DNA from: Zygnema circumcarinatum SAG 698-1b
Taxonomy: Eukaryota; Plantae; Zygnematophyceae
DNA length: 64,000 nt
Assembly: GCA_037447605.1 (NCBI GenBank)
Contig: CM074820.1
Coordinates: 2,046,001 to 2,110,000, forward strand
Reading direction: 5' to 3'
The position numbers were made by a program, and so were the translations under genes. Under the pieces are notes generated by a model. The model ran no database searches and was not told the DNA's origin. It was given only the letters and a program-made list of their open reading frames with translations. Of this stretch, positions 19,301 to 59,626 are shown in pieces (the stretch's first letter is position 1; each line of letters opens with the position of its first letter).

Positions 19301-22300
19301 TTGAAGCGGCTACGCAAGATCCAAGAGGGGCTGTTGGAAGAGATCTTTGGGGAGATCACCGACGAGGAAATTTGGGCCTTCATTCGAGCCTCAGTTACGG
19401 GGAGGTGTGTAATCAGTTGAATCAATTGAACTGACATGCATTTGATGAAATCACAGGTTTGCCAAACCTGCAAGGTTGACAGTGATTATTTTCAGTCCCA
19501 TCCACAACGTGTTACCCTTCTTTTGCTGTGCTTAAAAGACATTCTCTTCTATTATATAGCTGAACATGCTGTACCTTCTTCGGCAATGTTCTAAATCTTC
19601 CATTACCTCGCTGACTTACATGATAGGTTGCCATGATTATTGCACTTATTTCAGAATGCTGTGGATCGAAATACAGTAGCTTCTTCGATAGTCTCGTGTG
19701 TTGCATGTGGCGTATGTCAACTTGAAATTTGAGGAATGTACGCTTCTGCCGTGAAATACTTCAGGTGGCTATAGGGCGGACTGAAGCAGACAATTCCTTA
19801 AGCAAGGTGGAGGCTGTAGAACGGACGGAGGATAGCAAACCGGTGAGTTATGGGATTTTTTATTTCATAGTTATATCATTTCATGGCAAGCGAGACCTCG
19901 TCATCAGCAGGGATGGTTTGATACTTCATCATCAGTATATTGCTCTCGGCCTTTTTTGTGGCTTGAAACGCTGTAGTAGTATTAGTGAAGTTTACAAGTG
20001 TAATAGCTTAAATTTACGTAGAATAAGCTTCACTTAGAAATGAAATGAAATGTAAAAATGTAAGAAATGAAATGTAAGCCTTGGTTAACCCTAGCTAACC
20101 TTTGCTTGTTAACACTTTGTTGGCCATTTACAGAAAGGGAAAGTCGACCGGGAGGTCCGACCGAGGCTTGATCTGGCAGATCTGCAAATGTTCATACGCC
20201 CGGGAGATGAAGGCAGTCAGGTGCATTTCTTAGTTATTATTTGAAGCGTAATTGGAACGCCAAAGAATTACCTGCATTCATCCTTGTAGGCTCACATGCA
20301 CAGAGAAAGTTAGGACACAGTATATGGGGTACACTGCAATTCTGAAACCACAGAGTTTTGTCTAATTTCTCCTACTCTTTCTCTCCTCTACTTGTGATGG
20401 AGGGATTGCAGAAAGTAAGTGGGAAGTCAGAAAGACGAGTTCGTCCGAAGCTTGATCCTGAAGAGGTAAGAGGCGAGCTTCGTTCACCCTTAAGGAGAAA
20501 AGGGACATGTGCAGGTCTGGTCTGTTGCAGGCCATTCATGCTGAAGGAAAGGTAGAGGAAATCGGGCTTCATTCATTAGCTCATTGCTTATTCCAGAAAC
20601 TTCTTATCCTTCAAATTTTGCTTTCAGTTGAAAAGCTTGAGCTGAAAGTGACGATGGTATCAGTCGCCAACGCTGTGGGGTAGCCATCAAATTTGCCCTT
20701 TTTGGTTGGAAGTTGTACTTTTGACTTGTTGTCTCAATTGAACGAATAGCTGTTTGCATTTTCAGCATAAGTCTTACCAATGCTAAAGCTTGATGTTGTT
20801 CTGTTTGTTGATGTTTGACTCACACAGAAAGCAGCCATAAAAGCTGAAAAGGAAATTCGGCCAAGGCTAGATCTGGCGGAGCTGCAGATCTTCATACGAC
20901 CAGGAGAAGAGGGCAGCCTGGTAATTTCTGGCCAATCAATAATGGTTACTTTTGAGAGGAACAAGAGGGGGGAAGAGAGCGAGAGAAAGAGAGGGGGAGG
21001 GAATGGAAGAAGGAGAGGACGAGTGAAGGAAGAAGGTGAGGGAGGGGACGAGGGAGGGAGAGGGAGAGGGAGAGGGAGAGGGAGAGGGAGAGAGAGGGAG
21101 NNNNNNNNNNGGTTGTGCGATTGTGTTCAGTTCTTCGAGTAAGCCTCTTAAAATAAGCATTGTAATCACTCCTATTAACCCAAGTACTTTAGGACGTGGA
21201 TGTGCCATTTGTCAGCTCATGAATCATTCATGTGATTTTGAATTACGCGACCGAAAAGGATTTTCTATGCACCAATAACGCTGTCACTCTTTCTGTGATT
21301 TGAAAAAAAAACATGGCAGTTTATATTCTCCCATCAGCCCTAGCTGACTAGTTAGCCATGACTTGGGTGGGCATTTGCAGAAGGGCACAGGAAAGGAGCG
21401 GAGAGTGCTGCCTAAAGTGAACCTTGAAGAGGTGAGAATTTCAATACATGCAGAGGTTGAGATCCCCCCTCAATGCTAATTCTGCTGTCCGAAGAAAAAA
21501 ATTAAGTTGAATACGGGCTGTTGGAGACCATGTCACATCCATTCAGATAGTTAGCGGTCCTAGTTGCCAGTCTGACTAGTAGTATAGCTATCCTTGTGGC
21601 TTACAGAAAGCTCAAGGAAGGCCAGGCACCTGGACGAAATTGGATCTTTCTGAGCTGCAAATGTGTATATACCCAGGAGAAGAGGTATATAGCTGGCTAT
21701 GCTGCTAATTTCAAGTTAAATTACAAGCACTCACATGCAATCGTTGAGTTATACAAACACAAGACTGCTGGTCAATTAACATGACTCCTCAACCCCTCTC
21801 ACAGGCAAATGGTTCCCGTCACAATGTGTGGAAGTTGTGTCATTATTAATTAGATCTGTTCATTCCATGGTTGAGAAGAGGGGTTTGCAGAAAGCAGGAG
21901 TGAGGGCAGTCAGGGAAGTGAAGCAAAAGATAGAGGCTTTGACTCGCTCGGGAGATCAAAGTAGCCAGGTGGGGTTCTGGGCACATGGAAAAACTCGCTT
22001 TGAAGAAATATGAGAGTGGATAATTCATTCAATGTTGAGTCCTTGAGAGTTTAAAAAACATTAAACCGGAGTCATGGGCTAAACTAAGGTGTGGTATCTT
22101 GAAGGACGAGCTGATTGGAGAGTCAATGCTTGTCCTTACCGATTTTAGGTAAATTTCTAGGATAAAGTGGCTTGGACTAGTTTCTGCAAGTCCAAATTTT
22201 GGTGCATTTTTAGACGGTTGTCTTGCATATGAATTTCAATGGCACAGAGATTGTGCACCGCTTGTTGCGTTTGTTAGTCAATTTACCTTTTGTCCGGACA

Positions 22301-31800: not shown

Positions 31801-32788
31801 GAAAGGCTATCCCTCCCCCCTCCCCCCTCCCCCCTCCCACTCCTCTCCGAGATCATGCCAAAAAAACTGAACGACAGAAACTGTACTAAAACTCACGAAT
31901 TAATCGAAACATTGCATTTCACATCAAAACCAACATTAAAAGAAACAGCCAGTCCTTCCAGAGCAGAGCAGCCCCCTCCCTCCCCCTCTTCCTTTTCTGA
32001 AGGAGAAGGAGTGCCTTACAGGCGGCAGGTCCTCCAAGACATCTCGCAGCATCAGACCTTTCTCCAGCCTCTTTGCCAAACCAGGCTCCTCCTTCCAAGC
32101 CACAAGGGTATCCTGCTTCCCACAACAGTCTGCTTTGGAAACTGATCCTTACCACTCTCTCTCCCCCACCATACATCCCTCCCTCCTCCCTCCCTGCCCT
32201 TCTCCCTTTCTACGTTCCTCCTCCCTCCTTTCCCGACTCTCCCACCGCCCTCTCTCTCTTCTCCTTCCTCTGTTTCTACCATGCTCTTTACCTTTGTTTC
32301 CTCGCTTCACGAACTTGGATCAAATCATGTAATAAACTCCCCCACGTTTTTTTTTTTTTTTTTTTCCAAACGAGGGGTGATGAGACGAAGCCTCTCAAAA
32401 GGCCGAAAGGAGCCTACCTTGAAAATTCTAGGGATGGAATTTTTCATTTCAGTGCAGAGGTGGGTAGGCAACGGAAACTGAGGCAGACTCTGGAACATAG
32501 AACCCCACATAGGAAAGACTAGTCAAATCGATTCTGAGCTCATCCGGGCGGGAGGGGAAGCTGATGGGGCTTCCAAAGTGTTTCGACTAATATAGAAGAA
32601 TTTCTGTTCATCTTTTTGAACAAAAGCCGTTTTATATCTTACTTTATTCAATTTTACTTTTATTTTTTGGTCGGATGCTATTGCACGGAAGCCTCACCTC
32701 GCCAGAACGAGCCCCAAAGAAAAATGCTCGAAGGCGGAATTGTGCGACTCCAAATGACCCAGCCACCAGAAGGCCGGTCCGACTCTGA

Positions 32789-32836
<48 letters not shown>

Positions 32837-34639
32837 GGAGAGAGAGAGAGAGAGAATCTCGATTAAAAACATAGAGAGATAGAAAATAGCTAGTAAGCTT
32901 AATTATACAAATGGATACTAGCTTTTGGAGACCCACCTGGTAATTCATATCAACGAGAAACTTAATTGCAATTTTTGCAAGTACTCCGCCTCCGACTTTC
33001 ATCAAATCAGAGACGTTTTCCATGAGCACATATCTTGGGCGAAGGAATTTCACAATATTCATAAATACGAGAAGTTGGCGATTTTTCTCGTCAGTAAACG
33101 GATTCACAGTATCTCGATATAGATTATGGCCACTCACTCCCTGACAAGGAGGGCCCCCACATATCACTCCAACTTCCCCCTGCAAAATGCTCAATTTCAC
33201 CATAAAGATTATCACTTTCCATACATATGAATGCTTTCTTCTCTCTTCTCTCTTCTCTCTTCTCTCTTCTCTCTTCTCTCTTCTCTCTTCTCTCTTCTCT
33301 CTTCTCTCTTCTCTCTTCTCTCTTCTCTCTTCTCTCTTCTCTCTTCTCTCTTCTCTCTTCTCTCTTCTCTCTTCTCTCTTCTCTCTTCTCTCTTCTCTCG
33401 CTTCTCTCTCTCACGCTCTTTTTAGAGTCTCTCACTCATCGTCATGCTCGCGATATGAATAAGCATTCGATGTATTGAAATTGAAATTTTAGCGACAGAA
33501 GTTTTACCATTTCGTTATGCATCTTACCGGAAGTGGAAGAAGTTTGTCTCTCCGTGATTTTTGTACGAAGGCCTTCAAAAGGTCTTGGCATTGCCTGGAG
33601 TCCCAGCACATCCTCAAAATTCATTCAGTGAATGAGGAAGGAAGCTGCCAAGAAAGATCATGAAAAGGTGAACTGGGTTTTCACCTTCTGTACGGTTTTT
33701 TTTCTCGCGATTTGCAATTCAATCTAAGCATACCACAAAGTCAGATTGATAAAATTATATCAAGCACATGTCCACATTTTGAGTGCCAGTTTTTACTTCA
33801 TTTTTAACGCAATTCTACACCTCACAATTAACAGCAAAGTAGGGCGGGCATAATTCAAGAAATGTGCATACTCAAGGTTGGATTCGGGCTCCCAAGTATC
33901 CTCGTCCTCCCCATAGCCTGCCCATCTCACCTGCACCCCAAAAAATGCCAAAAATGCATTCCTCAAAAAGGAGCATATTTCCACCCTAGAACAAGAAGAA
34001 AACTGCGACCCCATTCATCTTGTCTCCCTTTCTGAAGATGGTCTTCTACAAAAAAAAGAACCGGCAAAAAGTACTTCTCTCTTACTCGAAATTGAAGCCT
34101 TGATTTGCAGTAGTTGATGCCCACTATCTCCTCCACTTCGTAATCATTTTCCTCCTTTGGTTGACCCTTCGCATTCCTCGCACCACTTAGATTCTCCTGC
34201 TTCCTTTTTCTCCCGCTGTTCTTTCTCATTCCCTCTCCCTTTCCCTTTCCCTCTCCCTCTCCCTCTCCCTCTCCCTCTCCTCCCTTTTTCTGCATCCCTC
34301 TATCAGCATTACTCTCTTCCGGAAACCTGTCACAAAGCCGCTTCCATTCCTTACAGAGCTCTAAAAAGTCTTCAGCATTTCCATTCCGGACCTGTTCCAT
34401 TACACAGCTCTCACCATTTCATTAGGCCATTCAAGCTTTCAGAATTTTGGACCTTTTTAGAGTTACAGGTAGTTCAAGATTTCTATGGATTCAGATGTTT
34501 GAAGCTTTGTGTGTTTGAAAAAGAGTAAAGGGTCACCAATGAGTTATCCACTTCAACTGGGGGGAGGGGGGGAAGGGGAGGGAAGACGAGGGAGAAAGAG
34601 AGTTTCGGAGAGAAAGGGCGAGAGAGAGAGAGAGAAGGG

Positions 34640-38766: not shown

Positions 38767-40031
38767 AGGAGGATGTTTGAGAGGTTCAAACGGTCATTAG
38801 AGTTTAGGATAGAGAGGAGGGAGCAGGGTATGGAGGTGTGGGAGGGCGGAAAAAGAAGGAAACAGACTGGGTGAGGGATGGGGGGAGGGAGGGAGGGGGG
38901 GAAAGGAGGGACTGAGACAAGAGGGATTCGGTATAGGAGAGAGAACAAGGAGAGGGCGCAGAAGAGAGAGAAAGAATCAGAGTAAAGGGGAAAGAAGAAG
39001 AGGAGGCGCAAAGAGGAGACACAGGACGAGAAGGCGCAGGAACGAGAGAGTGTCTGAGAGAGAGAGAGAGAGAGTGAGAGTGGGAAAGGGAGCCAAACGT
39101 TTCAGATTTGGGCGCCAAAGGCGGCCGTTCAAAGTGACCGTATGCCGTACCGTACGGACTGAATTGTACGACCTATGCGTACGGCTTCCTCGGACGCCAT
39201 CGCCAGCCGTGCACACAGTAAGGGTCTGTGGAGGAGGAAAATCGAACGGGAGATGCTCCTTCAGTATTATAGAAGGAGTACATATTCTACGGGAACCGCT
39301 CAGTATGCGAAGTACCTACTTTTTGTTCATCAGATGGAAAGTTTCGCCTCCAGTACTACTGATTTTTATAGGACGACTAACATGTTTATTGTGTACGAAT
39401 CCAAGATGGAACGGTAAGGGCCACAGCGAAGAAACCCTAAAAAATTACATCCATGACGTCATCAAAAAAACGTCAACCAATCAGGAGCCACCGAACACCA
39501 GTCGGGTGCGTCAGTGAGATGGCCAGGGCGGCAGGTTTTGTCCTTAGCTCGATCGTGGACACATCGCCATATCGCCGGCGTATCGGGTGTGACCGACAAA
39601 ACTTGCCGGCGCTAAAGCCGGCTAGAGTCCATGGCAGAAAAAAGAAACGGGCGACCACCTTTGGATATTGTTTTTATTTATTTATCTTACCTCTCAATAG
39701 AAACCATAAAATGCAAAAAAAAGTACACTACTGGGAAATAGGAATTGAATTACAAGGAAAAAAAAAAAAGAGGAAAGTTTTCCTAACCGGGACGAGTGAC
39801 AAACTACGTGGTTTCTACTTTGGGGTAGCACTGAACAATAACGATTCCTGACGAAGTTAATTAAAAATATGAATAAGGTGAACGACGAAGGTGAATGTCA
39901 GTAAGATGGTTTTGACACATGGGGGGCGACGAACATGCGCGACTGAGACTTCTCTCTTAAGTAATTCATAGTGAAATGACCTTTAATAATTAGTCTAAGG
40001 CTGATAAATTCAAGACGAGGGACAAAAGGGC

Positions 40032-41521
40032 CTATGCTTTGCTGAAACATGGCCAAAGGCAGTTCCCCTGCACAGCCGACCAAACAATGGTGTGAGAGAA
40101 GCCATTGCCAGAGAGAGAGAGAGAGAGAGAGAGAGATTGGTGTGCGAGAGATCACAAGCGAACGAGCAGCCACCAAAGCCCCTGACCTTGGCTCTCTGCT
40201 TGGGACGTGGTTTCGGAAAAGTTGGTATGCCCACGTTAAAGGCCTCTGTAAAGCCATCGTCAAGGACCGGCAAGGGACCCTTTTTGAACTGGCTTGCCGG
40301 CAGGGTGCTCACACGCTGCTGTTGAACAACGAAATGCACCACCCCCCCCCCCCCCCCCCCCCCCCCCNNNNNNNNNNCCCCCCCCCCCCCCCCCACACTC
40401 ACAGTGAGACAGACCAGCACGAAGGGAGGCAGGAGGAGGGGAGATAAACATGGGCTGGGTGGACTAACATGCATGAATGGAGGGCAGGAGGGATCGTGCT
40501 CACTACCAGGCAAGCCCAACGGACTCAACCAAACCTCCGAATTAACTACTAACCTTGCTGGGCATCTGCGAGTTTGCAGCTCCCGGAAACTGGGGCATGC
40601 TGCCTCCCCCCACCACCTTTTCAAACGACATAGTGAAGTTGCCGGGCTTGCTTCTATGCTCTGCCAAGCTGACCAGAGGGAAGGGCACAGCTTCAGCCCC
40701 CCCTCCCATTCCCACCGTTCTGCGTACAAACCTACCCTCCTCAGAGCCTTCCGTTCGTGGGCTAAAATGGGCTGTCGGCTGAAAGTGGTTTCCTTGTCCC
40801 CAGTCTGTGTGCATCTCCGCCTGCTCCCCCACTCGCAACCATTTGTCAAAGAGCAGCCAAACAGAGGGAGAGAAATGAGGGGAAAGACGGGGGATGGGGG
40901 GGAGAGGAGGGAGTGGCGAGGGAGGAGGAAGAGAGGAGGCGTAGGACGAAGGAGAGGAGAGGGTGAAGGTCGAGAAGAATTGGAGACGTGCAAGGGAGAC
41001 AAGGTGCAAGGAACTGGAGAGGAGTTGGAAGGAGAGAAGAGAAGGGAGATGAGGTGAAACTGATGCGGCGATGAGGCTGAGTTCACGATGGAAAGTACGA
41101 GAGAAGAGAGGGATTTACGCATGAAGGAGAGGGGGAGGCAGGATGAAATGAGAGGAGATGAAACAGAGGTCGGTTCCAATACTGAACATGAGCCCCCGAT
41201 GGTGACCTGCCTCAGTACTGACCTCCTGTCTCTCACATTCTAGGAAAAGAAATGTGGATCATATCAATACACACGACGAGATGGGAGGGTCTGACCACCA
41301 GGAGGCAACCGGCTTGGCAGATAGGCTACATGCGCGATGCGACATGAGACAATGCATAAACGTACTCTCTATTCTATCATCCTGAAACGGTATCTACCGG
41401 CATCCTCACTTTACCGGCCGCTTTCCATGCAGCAAAGCCAGCAACCGCAGAATCTCTCCCTCTTCCCCCCCCAAGCACCCCCACTCGTCCGCTTCTCCCA
41501 ACAACCTCCTCCCTCCAGAGA

Positions 41522-41565
<44 letters not shown>

Positions 41566-42972
41566 AACCTGCTCTGCCTGAGCGACCCGGAAGGACGGCA
41601 TTCCCCCACCCGCAGCCACCCTTTTGAATTCTTGCGTATAGTTCCCAGACCCAACGGTTGGCCAAGCCGGCTGCAGCTGCCCGCCTCTCTCTCCCGCACG
41701 AAGCTCTCCCTCCCCATCTCCCTCCAACCACACCCTCACAACCTGCTCGCTCTTCCCTTCATCTGCGGACCCTGACTCCGTCACCTGCTTCGCATGCCCC
41801 TGCACGGATTTCTCCTCTCCCGCTCCCCCCTGCACAGAAGTCGCATATTCCGGCCTACTTGTCGACGATTCCCGGCTTGCATCCCCGCCGTTCCCTCCTA
41901 CCTCAGCCACTTCAACAATTTCAAGTTCTACCTGAGACTTCTTCCGAATTCTCACGGCGGGCTGTGACTCTCCATTGTTCTCCGCCGCTCCCTTCTCAAG
42001 GCTTGCTAATAAAGGTCCCTCCATTTCTGCAGATTGAACGGCTCCCTGTTCTGCAGCAGTAGTAGCTCCTCCCATAGCCTCTCTTTGCCGCCCGCCAGAA
42101 AGCTCCCCCGAGGAGGAGGAGGAGGAGGAGGTGGAGGAGGAGTGTGCTGCATGGTCGCCCCTTCTCAGCCTTAGCTGATTTTTCTTCTCCTCAAATGCCT
42201 GTGTAAAATTAGACTTAGCATTCACTTTGCGAACTGCCTCCATCGGCGGAAACACAGGACCCGCCCCCTGCAGCCGCCAACCTGCACCGCTCTCATCAGC
42301 AAGACAGAGAAGGGAAGGTTCCCCCCCGTCTTTCCAATAGCCTTCCCTAAACAAAAGGGAGAGGAGGAGAGAGGAGATGAGAGGAGGAGAGGAGGAGAGG
42401 AGGAAAGGAGGAGAGGAGGAGAGAAGGGAAGGAGGAGAGGAAAGGAGGAGAGGAGGAGAGGAGGAGAGGAGGAGAGGAGGAGAGGAGAGGAGGAGAGGAG
42501 GAGAGGAAGAGGGGGAGAGGGGCGGAAGAGAGAGCTGAGAGGTGCGTACCGCGGGGCGGGGAGCGGGAGGTTCAGGATCGGGCCGAGCCCCGAACCATTT
42601 GCCCAGTAAAGTCGTTCGTTTCGGCTCCTCTGTCTCAATCCCTTGGGGGGGCTCTACAAGGAGGTGGTTAAAGACCTGCGTATACCCGTTCACAGTGCCT
42701 GTAGGGAAGAGCTCCTCTCCTGCCTCATCCTGCCCTTCCCTACATCAGGTTCAGGGCCACAATACAGGGGGACTTTTGCGGCTTTGGGGGCAGAAAGCAG
42801 GCAGGGAGGGGAGACCCTCACATGGGAGGCAGCCATGGCCGCCGGCCTTTGGCTTCTTGCTCAGTGAGGAGTTTGGTCGAGCAGTTGGTCCAACAGTTGG
42901 TATGGCCGGCGGGCTATTTGTCAGGAAGGGATCATCCCCCGCCGCACCCTGCTCCTGTACATTTTTAAAGCG
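40032..42972 (-). CDS. Putative RIN4/NOI-like protein with multiple [Y/F]TxxF repeats and a Cys-containing C-terminus; 5' end unresolved
   Basis: Phase-consistent spliced exons give HGCLPCTVNGYTQVFNHLL, GPVFPPMEAVRKVNAKSNFTQAFEEKK, PAWPTVGSGNYTQEFKRV, AVAGFAAWK, PFPLVSLAEHRSKPGNFTMSFEKV and LPVLDDGFTEAFN. The last exon (40067-40032) gives ...KPRPKQRAKGNCLWPCFSKA*. First coding exon not identified; a probable leader exon lies near 43710-43990. Confidence 0.6.
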
Positions 42973-44207
42973 CTGACCTTAGCATGTTTCAGACTGAAGC
43001 GCTAGTCTTAGGGCCCTGTAGACTCAAACTGTTTGAGCTTTAAGACGGAAGCGCGCATCTGAATAAAGCACTAATTTCAGAATGGATTCTGCAGAAGGCC
43101 AAATGCGAAACGATGGAAACAGAGCAGATATCATCTGACATGGAAAACATTGGCAAAAATAGATGAGATCATTGTTAATAATGTAGTCTGATATGTTTCC
43201 CAGCATCAACCCCATAATATCGAATACTAAGGTATCGCAGCCCTAAGCTCTCACCCTGAACAAGCGCGGATCCCTAACCTTATTACTAAAAGCTTAAGGT
43301 AACCTAACCTAGGTCAACGTAATGTACAGCAGCCCTAACTCGAAATCCTGAAACCTGGTCTGGCCTTCACACCCTACTTCTCCTAAACACTGACTTAAAA
43401 AAACATACTAGACCTCCAAGCATGCAACAACCATGCCATGCATTTCTGACCACAGCCATGCCACGCATTCATGCTAGCATTCCTAACTACGGAAAAGCCG
43501 ATATTGAAATGCACGCTAAGCAGTCTTCAGCAGGAGGAGGAACACATTCATGCTAATAATCCTTGATTAACCAAACCATCACTAAAAATTGCAAGTTCAG
43601 CATTCAGGGCCGCCAGACTTCAGCACACAATGCCATGTCATACCATGCCATGCCCTCAAAAACCTAATCCCTTAATCCTAATATTACACAGAACGCTAGC
43701 ACTGCATCTCACCCTACTTTCAGCCCAAACAGCAGCGGATTAACTTTTCTAACCTCCTCTTTAGCTAATGAATACGGATCGCAGCAGCAGCTGCGATCAG
43801 CTTCAGCAGCTGCGCGACGCCGCCATCGCATGCGCGAATTCACCGAGAAAGCGAAGAAAAGAACATTCCTGGGAAGGAGAGAGAGCGCGCCCGCGAGAGA
43901 GAAAGAGAGAGAGTGAGAGAGAGAGAGAGACCCCAGGTGGAGAGAACAGTCTAAGCCAACGGCCGGCACACGCCTGGGCAGTTGACCAGCCAACCGTTGG
44001 CACTTCCCACCGTCTGGAAAAGAACTTGAAATTCAAATACGTACTTTACAAAATCAGTTCTAGGGTATAATGTTCCTTATTTAAGTACTAATTCTGTTTG
44101 CTGGCAGTGTACGAAAGAGAAATCGTTCGTACAAAAATTTAAAGATTGGAATCCACTACGGTACTGACGTGTCAACTCGAAATTGATACTATTGTGTCAT
44201 TGAATAT

Positions 44208-45158
44208 GGGTAGTGATATTTCCACCCCTTTTTTGGATCCAAACACCCCTTCCCGGCCGGGCAGATTTCAAAAGGGGTTCAAAACGGAAAATGCTTTTTT
44301 CACACCTTTTTGGAATCGATACCCACCTTCTTCCGTCGGCTGATTCTATTTTTGCTAACCAAGGAAAATGATACCCCGTCACTGCATTTTGAATACTGTA
44401 TCCCGCCTCCCTGAATTTTTTTTTTGTGAGGGAAAGAAATATCTGCCAGCCCGAATCCGCTCGAAGTTGAAGATCCGTCCGCCACGAGATCATTCGCGGG
44501 TGTCCGTCCTTCACACGTGTGTGTCAATCGCAGCTGTCAATTTCCTCGAAGATCGCACCACTGCAGGTCACCGTTCGATCTGCAGCCGGGCTCGATCTTA
44601 GCGAATGGAAAGCGCCCACGAGTCCCGTCAAAGCCGGATCGCACGTGCGAGTGCGCGCGTTCTTCGGCCCAAGATCTCGTCATTGTTAGCTCCCAGCCAA
44701 TCAACAGCTGCCACGTGTTACATTTTTGACGTAGAAAATTTTGATTTGTCCAAGCTCTCAATGTACGAAATTTTGGGCTCCTCAAAGTTGCGACCGTACG
44801 ACATTTGTACGGACAAACTTTTGAGGTGACTTTGGCGGGATACGTGGGCACGTGCCATTCGCTGTGACCGAGCCCGGCTGCAGATCAAATGATGATCTGC
44901 CGTGTTGCGATCTGCGAGGGAATCGACGGCTGCGATTGACCGCACGCGTGAAAAAAAATTCAGGTAGGCGGGATATTCAAAATGGGGTGACGGGTTATCA
45001 TTTTCCTTGTTTCGCAAAAATAAAATCTGCCGATGGAGGGTGGGTATCGATTCCAAAAAGGTGTGAAAAAGGCATTTTCCGTTTTTAATCCTTTTTGAAA
45101 TCTGCCCGGCCGGGAAGGGGTGTTTGGATCCAAAAAAGGGGTGGAAATATCACTACCC
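44208..45158. mobile_element. Non-autonomous foldback / Mutator-like DNA transposon, 951 bp, very long TIRs, 8-bp TSD
   Basis: Ends GGGTAGTGATATTTCCACCCC... and ...GGGGTGGAAATATCACTACCC. The outer ~66 bp are identical in inverted orientation, and homology continues inward to ~44635 versus ~44830 (left arm has an ~85-bp extra segment). Direct repeat TTGAATAT at 44200-44207 and 45159-45166. Confidence 0.9.
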
Positions 45159-47197: not shown

Positions 47198-48520
47198 TCA
47201 TACCTGACTCCGTCCAAAGGAAAGGTTGTCGAATTCCGTAAGTTCTGTCCGGATGCTCCCCCCTTTTCCCGGGGCCAATCTGCTCCCAGAATGGGGACTC
47301 AGAGGCTCCGCCAGCTCCAATCTGGGAGAGGGCGAAAGCTCTTCTGAAGGTGCATGCGATCGGAATGCAACATCCATTGCATTGTCCGCTATGATGCGCA
47401 AGTCCGGCTGCAACCTCTCCTTCAAAGAGGGCCGCATTTGCGGTGCTCTCTCAACGCAGCGGAGAGCAAGGCTGAGGACCTCTCTCGCAGCTGTCACGTC
47501 CCATCCCCCTGCAGAGGGGTCGAGATGGGGGAGGAAAACCGCCACTGAGTGGTCCAAGTCGCGGTAGGGTTCGCGCACTCCACAGGATGCGAGCAGGTCG
47601 TGTACTATGCCAAGACGTTCCTCTCCAAGAAGGAGCTGCAGGATGGTGAGTCCAAGAGAGTATATGTCCGACTCCGGAGTAAGCACCTTGCTCTCCACAT
47701 AGTGTGGGTCAATGTACCTGCCGCGGGCGAAGGAAGCAGAGAGGAGGCACGTGTCAGGGCCTGTCTGAGCTTTTCGTCTGACAGACTCTCCCTCCAACTA
47801 ACTAGCTGCAGGGGCAGCTCCTCACCCATTGGTGCCATGGGGGGTGCAGCTGATGGCCGCCACGCCGGGAGGGATTTCCGTGGCGAGTTCGAAGCCGGAC
47901 AGTTTGCAGGTGTTCCAGGAGTCGAGGAGGATGTTGCCGGGATGAATGTTGCGATGGATGACACGCATTTCGTGGAGGAAGGCGACGGCAGCAGCCACCT
48001 CTGCGATGATGCGCATGCGGTCCCACCAGTCGAGAGGGAAAACTCTCTGCAGAACAAGCCCCGATGCGTACTTCGATTTGAGAGTTTTGAGCCGATCGTG
48101 GAGGCTTTCCACGGCGTATTCGCGCACAATGCAGAGGCGGGGGCTCTGCTGACAGCTTGCGCCATAGAGGGCCAGGATGTTGGGGTGCCGCAGACGGTGC
48201 AATAAGCGCACTTCGCGTTTGAAATCGTACAGGGAAGTGCCCTCCGCGCAGAGCTTCACTGCCAGAATGGCCCCCCACAGATGCGCAAGATACGTGCAGC
48301 CGAAGGTCGAGCGCGAGATGATGCCGCGATCGGAAAAAGCACTCGTGGCTGCAGAGAGCACGGCGTACGGCAGGTCGGCGTTGGGGACGGAGCTGATGTC
48401 GATGCTGGCAGCCAGCTCGTCCTCGGGAGACATGACCAGCTCCTGCAAACGCACCGATCCTGCAAGTTCACAGGCGGAAGAGGGAGGAAATTGTCTCTGG
48501 CAGGAGTCTCCTGCGCCCAT
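47198..48520 (-). CDS. Receptor-like cytoplasmic pseudokinase (RLCK-IX/PUB-kinase-like C-lobe), possible N-myristoylation (MGAGDSC)
   Basis: LWGAILAVK, FKREVRLLHRLRHPNILALYG, WWDRMRIIAEVA, IHRNIHPGNILLD (HRD>HRN), KLSGFELA (no DFG), YIDPHY, ESDIYSLGLTILQLL, LDPSAGGWD..LALRC...RPSLKERL. One intron near 47765-47830. ATG 48520 is chosen as the likely start; a short extra 3' exon near 46965-46980 is possible. Confidence 0.8.
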
Positions 48521-49853
48521 GGCGGACTCAGGCTGGCAGAGGAGGCGCGTCCTTGTCCCCGTCTGAGGGGCTGCCGTGGGGGTAGGGTCGGGCGGCAGCA
48601 CTGACCTTCCACATGTCTCAGCCCGAGCATGGCCGCCTGCCCGCCGCCCTCCCCCTCCAGAAGCAAGCAGGTCCCGCCCGGCGGGCTCCGCCCTCCCTGC
48701 CCTGCTCGCACGTGCGAACCGCCATGGCTGCCCGCCCTCCCGCCCTCGCCAGGCCGCCACCGCCTCTGACTTAAGGAGCCTACTTACTGTACTGTGTCCA
48801 GCCAATTACAGCCTGCCACGTCGTCACAAGAGACACGTGGTACGTTCGGATTGGTGGTTTTTGCCAGGGTGGCGCCAATCATTAAGGGTCGAGTTGGAGA
48901 GCGGCTATTGGCTGAAACTTTCCGCACTGGGCTTTTTGTAAGGAATGGCTGTACAAATTTCCGTACCGCGGTGAACAGAACGTACGGTGAAAAGTCAGAA
49001 GCAGAAAGTACTGTACGGAAATAGACAAAGTGACGATGGCGATCGGAGGACCGTTGGATGCGCCACGTGGCACCCCGTGGAGCTTTTTGGCGGTTCCGGC
49101 AAGTACATACCCCGCCCCCCGACCAGCTGCAGGGTAGGGCATGCCCGCGCAGGCCCTCTCCCCACCGGGGAGGGAGGGGCGGGAGGGGCGGGAGGGGCGG
49201 GAGGGGAGGAGGGAGGAGGGNNNNNNNNNNGGAGGGATGGAGGGAGAGGAGGAAGGGAGGGAGGGAAGAGAGGAGGAAGGGAGGGAGGGGAGGAATGGAG
49301 AGTTGGGAGGGAGAGGGGCGAGCTAAATTGACGAAGAAAACTACAAAGGGTTGCGTCGAACTGTGGGGATTAAAACTGCGAATCTATGGGAGCTCTCCTG
49401 AGCTTTTTTCAGGGATGGATGCTTGAACTCAGACGATGAACCGTGACCATGACTATATCATAACCACGAACATGACTATGAACTTCAACCATCACAAACG
49501 ACCTCACGTAAGATTAGTTTCAAATGTTTCCAGTAATATTCGAAGGTGATGGGAAGAGCACATCACTTTTTTGCTTATTTGTATATATGCGACCCGCAGA
49601 GAGACCGAATTCGATTGCACCCTAAAGACCATAAAACCAACGGTACCCCCTACTTGGGACCCCCCCCCCGGCTAAGAGGCAGGCCCTTCCCCTGCAGGAG
49701 TAAGTTCGCAACCTATTTCAAAACCGCGAGTACATCAGAGGACATACAGGAGGGTTTTAGGGTTTGTTCGTTTTCTCCGTAGCACCCGCCGGTAGAGAAA
49801 TCTCTCCATATCACGAGGAGAGGCCACCTTTCGAATTTGGTGCCCTGACGAAC

Positions 49854-56758: not shown

Positions 56759-59326
56759 ATGGGCTGCGCTGCGTCCTCCCTGCTCCCTCAGAAGCTCAGA
56801 AAGAAGGGGAAGGGCTCCTCCTTCATCCGGTCGCTCTCCCCCGCCGAGGAGGAGCAGGAGGAGGAGGAGAAGGAGGATGCTGGGGGGAGGCTTTCGGCGC
56901 TGCGCGTGTTCCCCTACAGCGAGCTCGCGGGGGCGACTCGCAACTTCCGCGCAAGCGAGAAGATTGGCAGCGGAGCCTTCGGGAACGTGTACCGTGGGAC
57001 GCTGGGAGGGGGGCAGGGGGGGGAGGGAGAGGGAGAGGGAGAGGGAGGGGGAGGGAGAGGAGGGGCGCCGCTGGAGATAGCGGTGAAGCGGTCCAAGCCG
57101 GGGGCGCTGCAGGGCAGCCGGGAATGGATTGTGAGTGGAGCTGGGCCTTAGCGCGGAGGGAAGGGGAGAGGAGCTGAAAAGGGGGAGGGAGGGTGCGGGT
57201 ATTCATTCATGGCGCATTGTCATCAGCTTCATCATCGTCAGTCGTCGTCGTCGTCGTCGTCTCCTCAGGCACTGTAATGAAATTTATTTTCTGAGCATTT
57301 ATAGCAAATTTCTCCTACGAGAAAGGGTGGCCATTCAACGCGCCAATCGGCGGCGGAGATATTTTTTTCCGGTTAAGAATAAGTAGTTGACATGAGTTTG
57401 AAATTCGTGGAACAAGTCTGAGCTGAAGTGCTTTCAAAGCTTCCTCCACACCCCTTTCTCCCAGTCTCTCCCCTCGCCGCCATGGCTGACACCCGTCCCT
57501 CGGAAGGCGTTATGCTATGCGTCGGGCGAAGTAGGGTTGTTTGGGATATGGACGTTTTTGACATGATGTGAAGGTGGTGGTGCCATAGAAATGCTAAGTC
57601 AACATTCTTCTTAACATACTGGGCTTATCTCCTGTTCCTTCAGCATCAGTTGGCACTTGAGTTGTCCTTTTGTGAAGCCTTCTCTCGAGGTTCACAGAGT
57701 CGGATATCTCCCTCCTCTAGTGAGCCCGTGATAGAGCTCGGTATGCAGCCCTTAATCTCTCACTCGGAAAGGTTAGGTTTGGCATACTCTGATCCCTCAG
57801 ACAAATGAATATGTTTGGGGTTTATGGATGATGTCAGATGGAGGTCCGTACATTGGAGAAGCTTCATCATCCAAATGTAAGTCAAGAATTCTGGTCTTGC
57901 ACAGGGATAGCCCTCATATATTAAATTATTTCTTTTTCGAACTATTGCCGGCAAATTAGCGAGCCAGATTGCAGCCTTCCAGGCCCTGCGAGATGGGGGA
58001 GAGTCCCTGCATGCATGCATGCATGCATGCTGATGTGGCGGATGACGATTGGCGGCAGGTGGTGCGTCTGCTGGGGTACGGGGCAGAGCGGGAGGAGCTG
58101 CTGCTCGCCTATGAGCTCATGCCACGTGGCAGCCTCTTCGATGCTCTCTTCTCGTCACGTGAGTCTCCAAAAGGTTCTGGGAAGACAAAACGTTGGCCCT
58201 TCAACAAGGCATTGTTGGCGCTTTAGCAGCGGAAGTATAATGAATGGCAGCGGAAGCGGTTATGGGGCCCTCCTCCCTCCCTCCCTCCCTCCCCCTCCCC
58301 TTCCCCCTCCCNNNNNNNNNNCTTGCATGAAGGGGACTGCGGATGGTGCAGGGCCCCTGTACCTGGACTGGCGGCAGCGCATGCTGATCGCCCTTGATGG
58401 AGCGAAAGGGCTCAAATATCTCCACAGCAACAATGTCATGCACCGCGACATGAAGGCGGGAAACCTGCTCCTGGATAAGGTGAGCTTTGCAGCTCACAGT
58501 CAATACAGGGTGTGCTCTCCGGACTGTGTTTGGTTGGAGACGAAGTGAGGCAGCAGGGTCTCATCATTGGCCTCTTATTATTCACCCTGCTTTCAACTTA
58601 TGATGGGTGTCTGCGTTTGTTTGCAGAACCTTAGAGCAAAGGTGACAGACTTTGGCTTGGCCAGAGCCGGACCTTTCGGCGGTGCCGATGCTGTCCCGAC
58701 CCTCATCAAGGGCACGCACGGATACATATGCCCCCACTATCTATTCACAGGTATGACCCAACTCAGCCTCTCCCACTCTCCCTCTCCCTCTCTCCCTCTC
58801 CCTTCACTCTGCTCTGTCTGTTGCAGACGGCTGGCTATGCATGGTCACCATCCCCCTCCATTCTGTGCCTTCCTCTGCATCCGTTTCCAGCATCCCCCTC
58901 TTCCTTCTTGGATCAAAAACCATCTAAATTGTACTCACGTTTCGGGTCGACCCAAATGCATGTGCAGGCACCGCGGGTCTGTCAGTGGACATTTTCGCCT
59001 TTGGGGTGGTCCTATTCGAGCTCGTGACAGGGCGTCGCAACACGCTGAGTGACGGGCAGCATTTGACGGACTGGGTGAGGGCGAGGGCACGCATAGCTCC
59101 CTCGTCGGGGGAGCTCAGTTCGGGCCTGCACGCGTCCTCGCACTACATTGGGCACATCATAGATCGGCAGTTTCAGCCGCTGAGCATGCAGCCGCATGCC
59201 ACCCGCCGATCCATGCAAGCGGCCGTTTGGCTCGCCAGTGAGTGCGTGGAGAGGCAGCCCGCAGCGAGGCCGTCAGCGGAGCAGGTGGTGGCGCGTCTGA
59301 AGGAGGTCGTCCAGATGTGCTCCTGA
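56759..59326 (+). CDS. Catalytically intact receptor-like cytoplasmic kinase, RLCK-VII (PBS1/PBL)-like, with MGC lipidation motif; 6 exons
   Basis: MGCAAS..., [48 protein letters not shown] / [13 protein letters not shown] / VVRLLGY...YELMPRGSL / [36 protein letters not shown] / [13 protein letters not shown]...[12 protein letters not shown] / [16 protein letters not shown]...[11 protein letters not shown]. Confidence 0.93.
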
Positions 59327-59526: not shown

Positions 59527-59626
59527 NNNNNNNNNNNNNNNNNNNNNNNNNNNNNNNNNNNNNNNNNNNNNNNNNNNNNNNNNNNNNNNNNNNNNNNNNN
59601 NNNNNNNNNNNNNNNNNNNNNNNNNN
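59527..59626. other. Assembly gap (100 N)
   Basis: Run of 100 N. Additional 10-N gaps lie at ~15953, 21101, 40368, 49221, 53312 and 58312, all inside G- or C-rich purine/pyrimidine tracts. Confidence 0.98.

Follow-up and report, generated by a model that had tools for sequence, protein, structure and literature searches.

A stretch of 64,000 nucleotides from the streptophyte alga Zygnema circumcarinatum SAG 698-1b (assembly GCA_037447605.1, contig CM074820.1, positions 2,046,001 to 2,110,000; hereafter the window, in which all coordinates below are given) carries on its minus strand a predicted eight-exon gene, lying between 43831 and 40032, with five copies of the short peptide motif [Y/F]TxxF. 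This motif is the Thr-containing half of the signature of the NOI family, which includes RIN4, a hub protein central to plant immunity that also partners the exocyst; the other half, PxFGxW, is the site exploited by the bacterial AvrRpt2. What defines the family is a domain some 30 residues long in which PXFGXW and Y/FTXXF occur together (Afzal et al., 2013, PMC3661340). We herein describe the motif copies and the gene model that joins them, and weigh how far the encoded protein can be compared with RIN4.

Three-frame translation of 40000-43000, read together with the list of open reading frames (ORFs), gives five [G/N]-[Y/F]-T-x-x-F motifs on the minus strand, as an earlier note on this DNA had claimed, and places all of them in open, splice-compatible frames:

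Motif 1, NGYTQVF, minus strand, Y/F codon begins at 42684
Motif 2, SNFTQAF, minus strand, Y/F codon begins at 42207
Motif 3, GNYTQEF, minus strand, Y/F codon begins at 41640
Motif 4, GNFTMSF, minus strand, Y/F codon begins at 40637
Motif 5, DGFTEAF, minus strand, Y/F codon begins at 40252

Across the six-frame translation of the whole window the pattern [YF]T..F is matched 29 times, and five of these 29 matches fall within the 2.45 kb considered here, on one strand. The modelled protein contains five copies of [Y/F]TxxF against 0.044 expected from 200,000 shuffles (Poisson P ~1e-9), and the residue before the core is G or N in every copy (5/5, P = 1e-4). The surroundings of the core are patterned as well: in units 3-5 it is followed by V-x(1-5)-[M/I]-P-x-F, and a downstream PxF, 5-9 residues after the core, occurs in three of the five units (P = 9e-5), with an upstream P.[FW], the order found in NOI proteins, within 20 residues of the core in two of the five (P = 0.03). 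The accompanying segments PVFPP, MPSF, AVAGFAAW, MPQF and IPTF, also named earlier, were all recovered in the same frames as the motifs. The repeated motif is real and clearly non-random.

At the DNA level the copies have diverged. Nucleotide identity of the core between units is 36-58%, and the DNA-level repeats of the region are GA/CT low-complexity sequence in introns only, so the module copies are not recent DNA duplications. The invariant Thr is encoded by ACG, ACA, ACG, ACT and ACA in the five units, and the aromatic residues of the motif by TAT, TTT or TTC; that the units differ in DNA while T, F and Y/F have been kept through different codons points to selection on the peptide. The five module copies are old, diverged and retained at the protein level.

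An eight-exon GT-AG model on the minus strand joins the motifs into one predicted ORF of 530 codons with consistent phases, from ATG 43831 to the TAG at 40032 (stop 40032-40034). Its exons are as follows, a slash marking the splice border:

43754-43831, minus strand: exon 1, tentative; ATG 43831, 26 codons, donor GAG/GTTAGA, phase 0
42822-42954, minus strand: exon 2; acceptor tgtacag/GAG, donor T/GTGAGG, phase 1; a DDPF and an AIPTVGP..RP stretch
42550-42698, minus strand: exon 3; module 1, GYTQVF at 42667-42684; the codon score favours the frame
41569-42267, minus strand: exon 4; 233 codons, modules 2 and 3
41410-41508, minus strand: exon 5; ..AVAGFAAWKAAGK; weak acceptor GAG/G
40554-40820, minus strand: exon 6; module 4, with VPFPL.., NFTMSF at 40620-40637 and MPQF at 40587-40598
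40187-40318, minus strand: exon 7; module 5, with GFTEAF at 40235-40252 and IPTF at 40217-40228, and the basic KPRPKQRAK
40032-40067, minus strand: exon 8, a mini-exon; GNCLWPCFSKA and TAG; acceptor gtgcag/GGG, phase 0

Six of the seven acceptors read CAG/G or CAG/C. The exons are purine-rich, with a GC fraction of 0.56-0.62 (0.50 in the 36-nt last exon), several introns are strongly pyrimidine-rich, and composition changes sharply at the proposed borders. When the main exons of the gene served to train a codon model, with each left out in turn for testing, the frame proposed here scored better than the others in all of them, by 0.25-0.6 bit per codon; exon 2 (-0.08 in frame versus -0.5 in other frames) and exon 5 (+0.23 versus -0.64 and -0.80) are supported too, and exon 8 itself scores low. 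Exons 2 and 3 are joined through a split TGC codon. Within exon 4, whose other frames contain many stops, NFTQAF of module 2 (42190-42207) is preceded by PVFPP, NYTQEF of module 3 (41623-41640) is followed by MPSF (41590-41601), and a long Ser/Gly/Glu-rich linker separates the two modules. Exon 7 starts 17 residues ahead of module 5. The tail KPRPKQRAK/GNCLWPCFSKA, with its Cys codons at 40059-40061 and 40047-40049, results from a predicted splice between 40186 (GT donor) and 40068 (AG acceptor), and by this splice the end proposed earlier, basic residues plus GNCLWPCFSKA and a stop, is obtained.

The 5' part of the model is less secure. An ATG at 42972, which had been taken as the start, is out of frame and meets a stop after 13 codons; it adjoins the acceptor of exon 2, so the gene extends beyond the 5' limit set at that time. 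Of the upstream segments with an ATG, exon 1 alone was found to be in phase with exon 2. Its CCC run is coded by a (CTG)n microsatellite, and its codon score does not discriminate the frame. ATG 43831 stands in a weak Kozak context, and a second ATG (43826), 5 nt downstream and in a strong context, opens a 7-codon ORF; either ATG 43826 forms a short overlapping upstream ORF, or else the true start is not in exon 1. Where exon 4 begins at its 5' side is uncertain, since the CT-rich sequence ahead of it is open in frame as well, and intron 4 (60 nt, (CT)n) might also be retained in frame.

CT-rich tracts or (CT)n microsatellites lie on the minus strand at 40860-41140, 41509-41568, 42270-42545 and 43860-43945. 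They are found in introns 3, 4 and 7 as well as ahead of both candidate start codons, and are open in several frames, which gives rise to long spurious ORFs such as one of 408 aa at 40010-41236.

Two other endings are predicted after exon 4:

41262-41381, minus strand: alternative terminal exon; acceptor tttCAG at 41382-41384; three-module protein ending ..SSCVLI and stop (CaaX box)
41410-41512, minus strand: alternative reading of exon 5; acceptor 4 nt upstream, frame shifted; end ..RFCGCWLCCMESGR and stop

Both are ends of the lipidation type (..FCGCWLCCMESGR and stop, ..SSCVLI and stop), as would suit a pair of genes in tandem, or one gene with different ends, in place of the single gene modelled above. 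In the two-gene version, a three-module protein from exons 1-4 with a Cys-rich or CaaX tail would be followed by a two-module protein of 141 residues, read from ATG 40814 through exons 6-8. This ATG is in frame within exon 6 and sits behind a long CT-rich tract resembling the one upstream of exon 1, and the acceptor of exon 5, on which the single gene depends, is the weakest of the model. By the self-trained codon score, however, the frame that runs on into exon 6 is clearly the better one (+0.23 versus -0.64 for the alternative exon 5 reading), and the low-GC CaaX exon scored non-coding-like at -0.51, although Cys-rich tails are expected to score low in the codon model anyway, as exon 8 does. 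The donor of exon 5 and the acceptor of exon 6 are good and phase-compatible, and the sequences flanking the two putative genes, when aligned, show no homology. We regard a split of the locus, or alternative ends, as unlikely and retain the single eight-exon gene.

The sequence between exons 6 and 7 contains one interruption:

40368-40377: assembly gap, N x 10, in a poly-C/poly-G homopolymer within predicted intron 6 (40319-40553)

The gap is flanked by runs of 26 and 17 C (plus strand) and lies 49-58 nt upstream of the acceptor of intron 6; being inside the predicted intron, it affects no codon. The link from exon 6 to exons 7-8 is drawn from the shared strand, the 0/0 phase and the same motif family on either side. 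The window has six 10-N gaps (15953, 21101, 40368, 49221, 53312 and 58312), five of them inside purine- or pyrimidine-only low-complexity tracts and one, at 21101, with such a tract on one side only; these gaps probably mark unresolved repeat length and not missing unique sequence. A 100-N gap at 59527 has ordinary flanks.

Upstream of the putative exon 1, at a distance of 0.4-1.3 kb, lies a large, near-palindromic inverted repeat (44208-45158). Complementarity is 96% between the outer arms (44208-44330 and 45036-45158) and 83-88% in further arm pairs, and the centre measures 196 nt; the repeat may be a fold-back element, or else a hairpin-RNA locus. The next upstream gene, at 47198-48805 on the minus strand, encodes a protein kinase (Pkinase / PK_Tyr_Ser-Thr, E ~1e-18) whose N-terminal part is a long non-kinase region. 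A kinase fragment (58015-58545, plus strand) and an exon of a C-5 cytosine DNA methyltransferase (32697-33215, minus strand) are also present in the window.

The protein encoded by the eight exons is rich in Gly, Ala, Glu, Ser and Pro, and 66% of it consists of the disorder-promoting residues A/G/R/Q/S/E/K/P. A hydrophobic segment is absent, the best 19-residue Kyte-Doolittle window reaching 1.08, and AlphaFold2, run on the 233 residues of exon 4 as a single sequence, gave a mean predicted local distance difference test score (pLDDT) of 41, with a lone modest helix over module 2. From this composition, the lack of a hydrophobic segment and the low pLDDT, the protein is read as a disordered chain with short conserved modules. 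Several short aromatic-centred motifs are likewise found in multivalent disordered scaffolds such as endocytic adaptors with repeated NPF/DPF, and one DDPF occurs in exon 2, but the repeated motif here is a different one.

Through the predicted splice between exons 7 and 8, the tail GNCLWPCFSKA has its two Cys at positions -9 and -5, flanked by W and F, and the predicted last intron lies 2 residues ahead of the first tail Cys. RIN4 (211 residues) is palmitoylated at Cys203-205. Its homologues carry one to three aromatic-flanked Cys in the last 12 residues, and have an intron before the C-terminal NOI, with the last intron 0-1 residue ahead of the Cys (Afzal et al., 2013, PMC3661340). A Cys near the C-terminus after a basic stretch, here KPRPKQRAK, is also common to CaaX-prenylated membrane-anchored proteins; the main model, however, ends in C-F-S-K-A with Cys at -5 and not at -4, so its tail is not a canonical CaaX box, and CVLI followed by a stop is found only in the poorly scoring alternative exon 41262-41381.

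With the NOI/RIN4-like proteins (PF05627; Arabidopsis RIN4, NOI1-14) the algal protein thus has several features in common. The [Y/F]TxxF core is present five times, together with the preceding Gly and the invariant Thr, which in RIN4 is the phospho-site T21/T166; the chain is intrinsically disordered; an aromatic-flanked Cys stands within the last 12 residues, and by the predicted splice a short last exon starts just before it; and the organism belongs to the plant lineage. There are also differences. P.FG.W is absent from the model and from every frame of the exons, the sole F..W being the GFAAW of exon 5, which has neither the P nor the G, and the degenerate AvrRpt2-type sites proposed earlier are for that reason not supported by the data. 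RIN4 and other NOI proteins have one or two modules and the algal protein has five; the statistically significant PxF comes after the core here (an upstream P.[FW] occurs in two of the five units) and before it in NOI; and the chain, at about 530 residues, has very long linkers. The host also differs, for the family has been traced back to moss and reported only from there upward (PMC3661340), with none in Chlorophyta, Rhodophyta or Marchantia (PMC9514647), the streptophyte algae lying outside the sampling of both papers, and our literature search for RIN4/NOI in streptophyte algae found no paper.

Similarity to the NOI profile had been set beforehand as the test by which the NOI reading could be refuted. 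Pfam hmmscan of each exon separately, and of the alternative ends, gave no PF05627 match at E <= 10, in a search where HMMER's filters conceal similarity that is very weak; the only hits, a "PT disordered repeat" below threshold on exon 2 and an OS-D match due to chance, were set aside. As two defining features, PxFGxW and a PF05627 match, were looked for and not found, the gene should not, on its sequence, be filed as a NOI-family member. The expanded NOI-family protein described in the earlier note accordingly survives in part: the repeated [Y/F]TxxF, the Cys/aromatic tail and the position of the last intron stand, the profile, the PxFGxW and a homologue do not, and the order of PxF and core leans to the contrary.

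Searches for relatives were equally empty. Word-indexed protein searches with the exon 4 region, exon 6 and the exon 7 region returned no match within length limits, and a profile of the five units, run against 1.84 billion representatives, matched no plant protein; its sole match, a bacterial surface protein with seven NFTNAF repeats, was taken as chance. Among PDB sequences, searched with single units and with the unit profile, no RIN4 chain appeared at E <= 10, the presence of RIN4 in that set not having been checked. The only PDB match of the unit profile was a plant EH domain (6yet, E = 0.4), inside a folded domain and attributed to chance, and a ciliary protein among the PDB sequence matches (E 0.4-1) was dismissed in the same way. 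The ESM Atlas search gave no usable match, the two unspliced ORF readings of exon 6 had no encoding contig on record, and a metagenome scan yielded one bacterial contig with the word EAVPFPLV, out of frame and hence a chance hit.

These results bear directly on whether the protein is a true, diverged homologue of NOI/RIN4, in which case the family would predate land plants, the [Y/F]TxxF core and lipid tail would be ancestral, and PxFGxW would have been lost here or gained later. Such descent would agree with the disordered chain and the plant lineage of the organism, with the Cys and aromatic residues at the C-terminus and an intron directly ahead of them, which fit the family (PMC3661340), with the residues after the five cores (N/E/K, often K/R-V, as around RIN4 HIFN167-170), and with a P.[FW] 6-14 residues before the core in two units. 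This upstream P.[FW], however, is barely above chance (P = 0.03), and the PxF that is significant lies downstream, in the reverse of the NOI order. Neither PF05627 at E <= 10 on any exon nor PxFGxW was found, the five-unit profile drew no plant protein, and a 6-residue motif with a Cys tail can arise by convergence. On this balance we consider true homology rather doubtful, and a placement of the gene as a pre-land-plant branch of the RIN4/NOI family unlikely.

What the analysis has obtained is a set of motif repeats, conservation at the protein level, consistent splice phases and disorder. A docking scaffold held at the membrane and equipped with a phospho-switch is the mode of action of RIN4/NOI, and the most likely product of the locus is a scaffold that would work in a similar way: disordered, multivalent and lipid-anchored. 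The mini-exon would contribute the basic-plus-Cys/aromatic tail ..RAK/GNCLWPCFSKA, S-acylation of the tail cysteines would hold the chain on the membrane, the five modules would serve as multivalent docking sites, and their invariant Thr may be a phospho-switch; expression, lipidation, docking and phosphorylation are steps that we infer. That the gene is real is very probable. Membrane anchoring through the tail Cys is possible, though a little short of an even chance, and the whole explanation, a nuclear streptophyte-alga gene for a disordered, lipid-anchored, multivalent short-motif scaffold with the mechanism just described, we hold at about even.

Several points weigh against this explanation. 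No homologue, NOI or other, was found in any database searched, and there is consequently no cross-species conservation; seven sequencing runs from three studies contain the DNA, and none is on record as RNA; exon 1, the start of exon 4 and the acceptor of exon 5 are uncertain and other endings are possible; and lipidation and binding are pure inference. The lack of RNA among the recorded runs, of a homologue and of a Pfam domain would also be expected of a non-functional locus, whose ORFs arose by chance from biased composition or belong to a decaying pseudogene, and low-complexity sequence easily keeps frames open. Against such an origin, five motif copies have been kept through synonymous change, their frames are connected via seven canonical introns without a stop, and the other frames of exon 4 are full of stops; we judge it very unlikely, and a functional scaffold gene remains our preferred account.

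If the resemblance to NOI proteins is convergent, the locus would be a clean example of a selected, repeated short-motif scaffold in an orphan disordered protein, of limited general interest. An algal protein that combines the Thr-containing half of the NOI signature with a lipid-tail architecture would offer a testable entry to the origin of the RIN4 hub and to its pre-immune function. Should the gene prove to be a pre-land-plant branch of the family, a lipid-anchored scaffold with [Y/F]TxxF as its phospho-switch would have arisen in streptophyte algae before PxFGxW was fixed.

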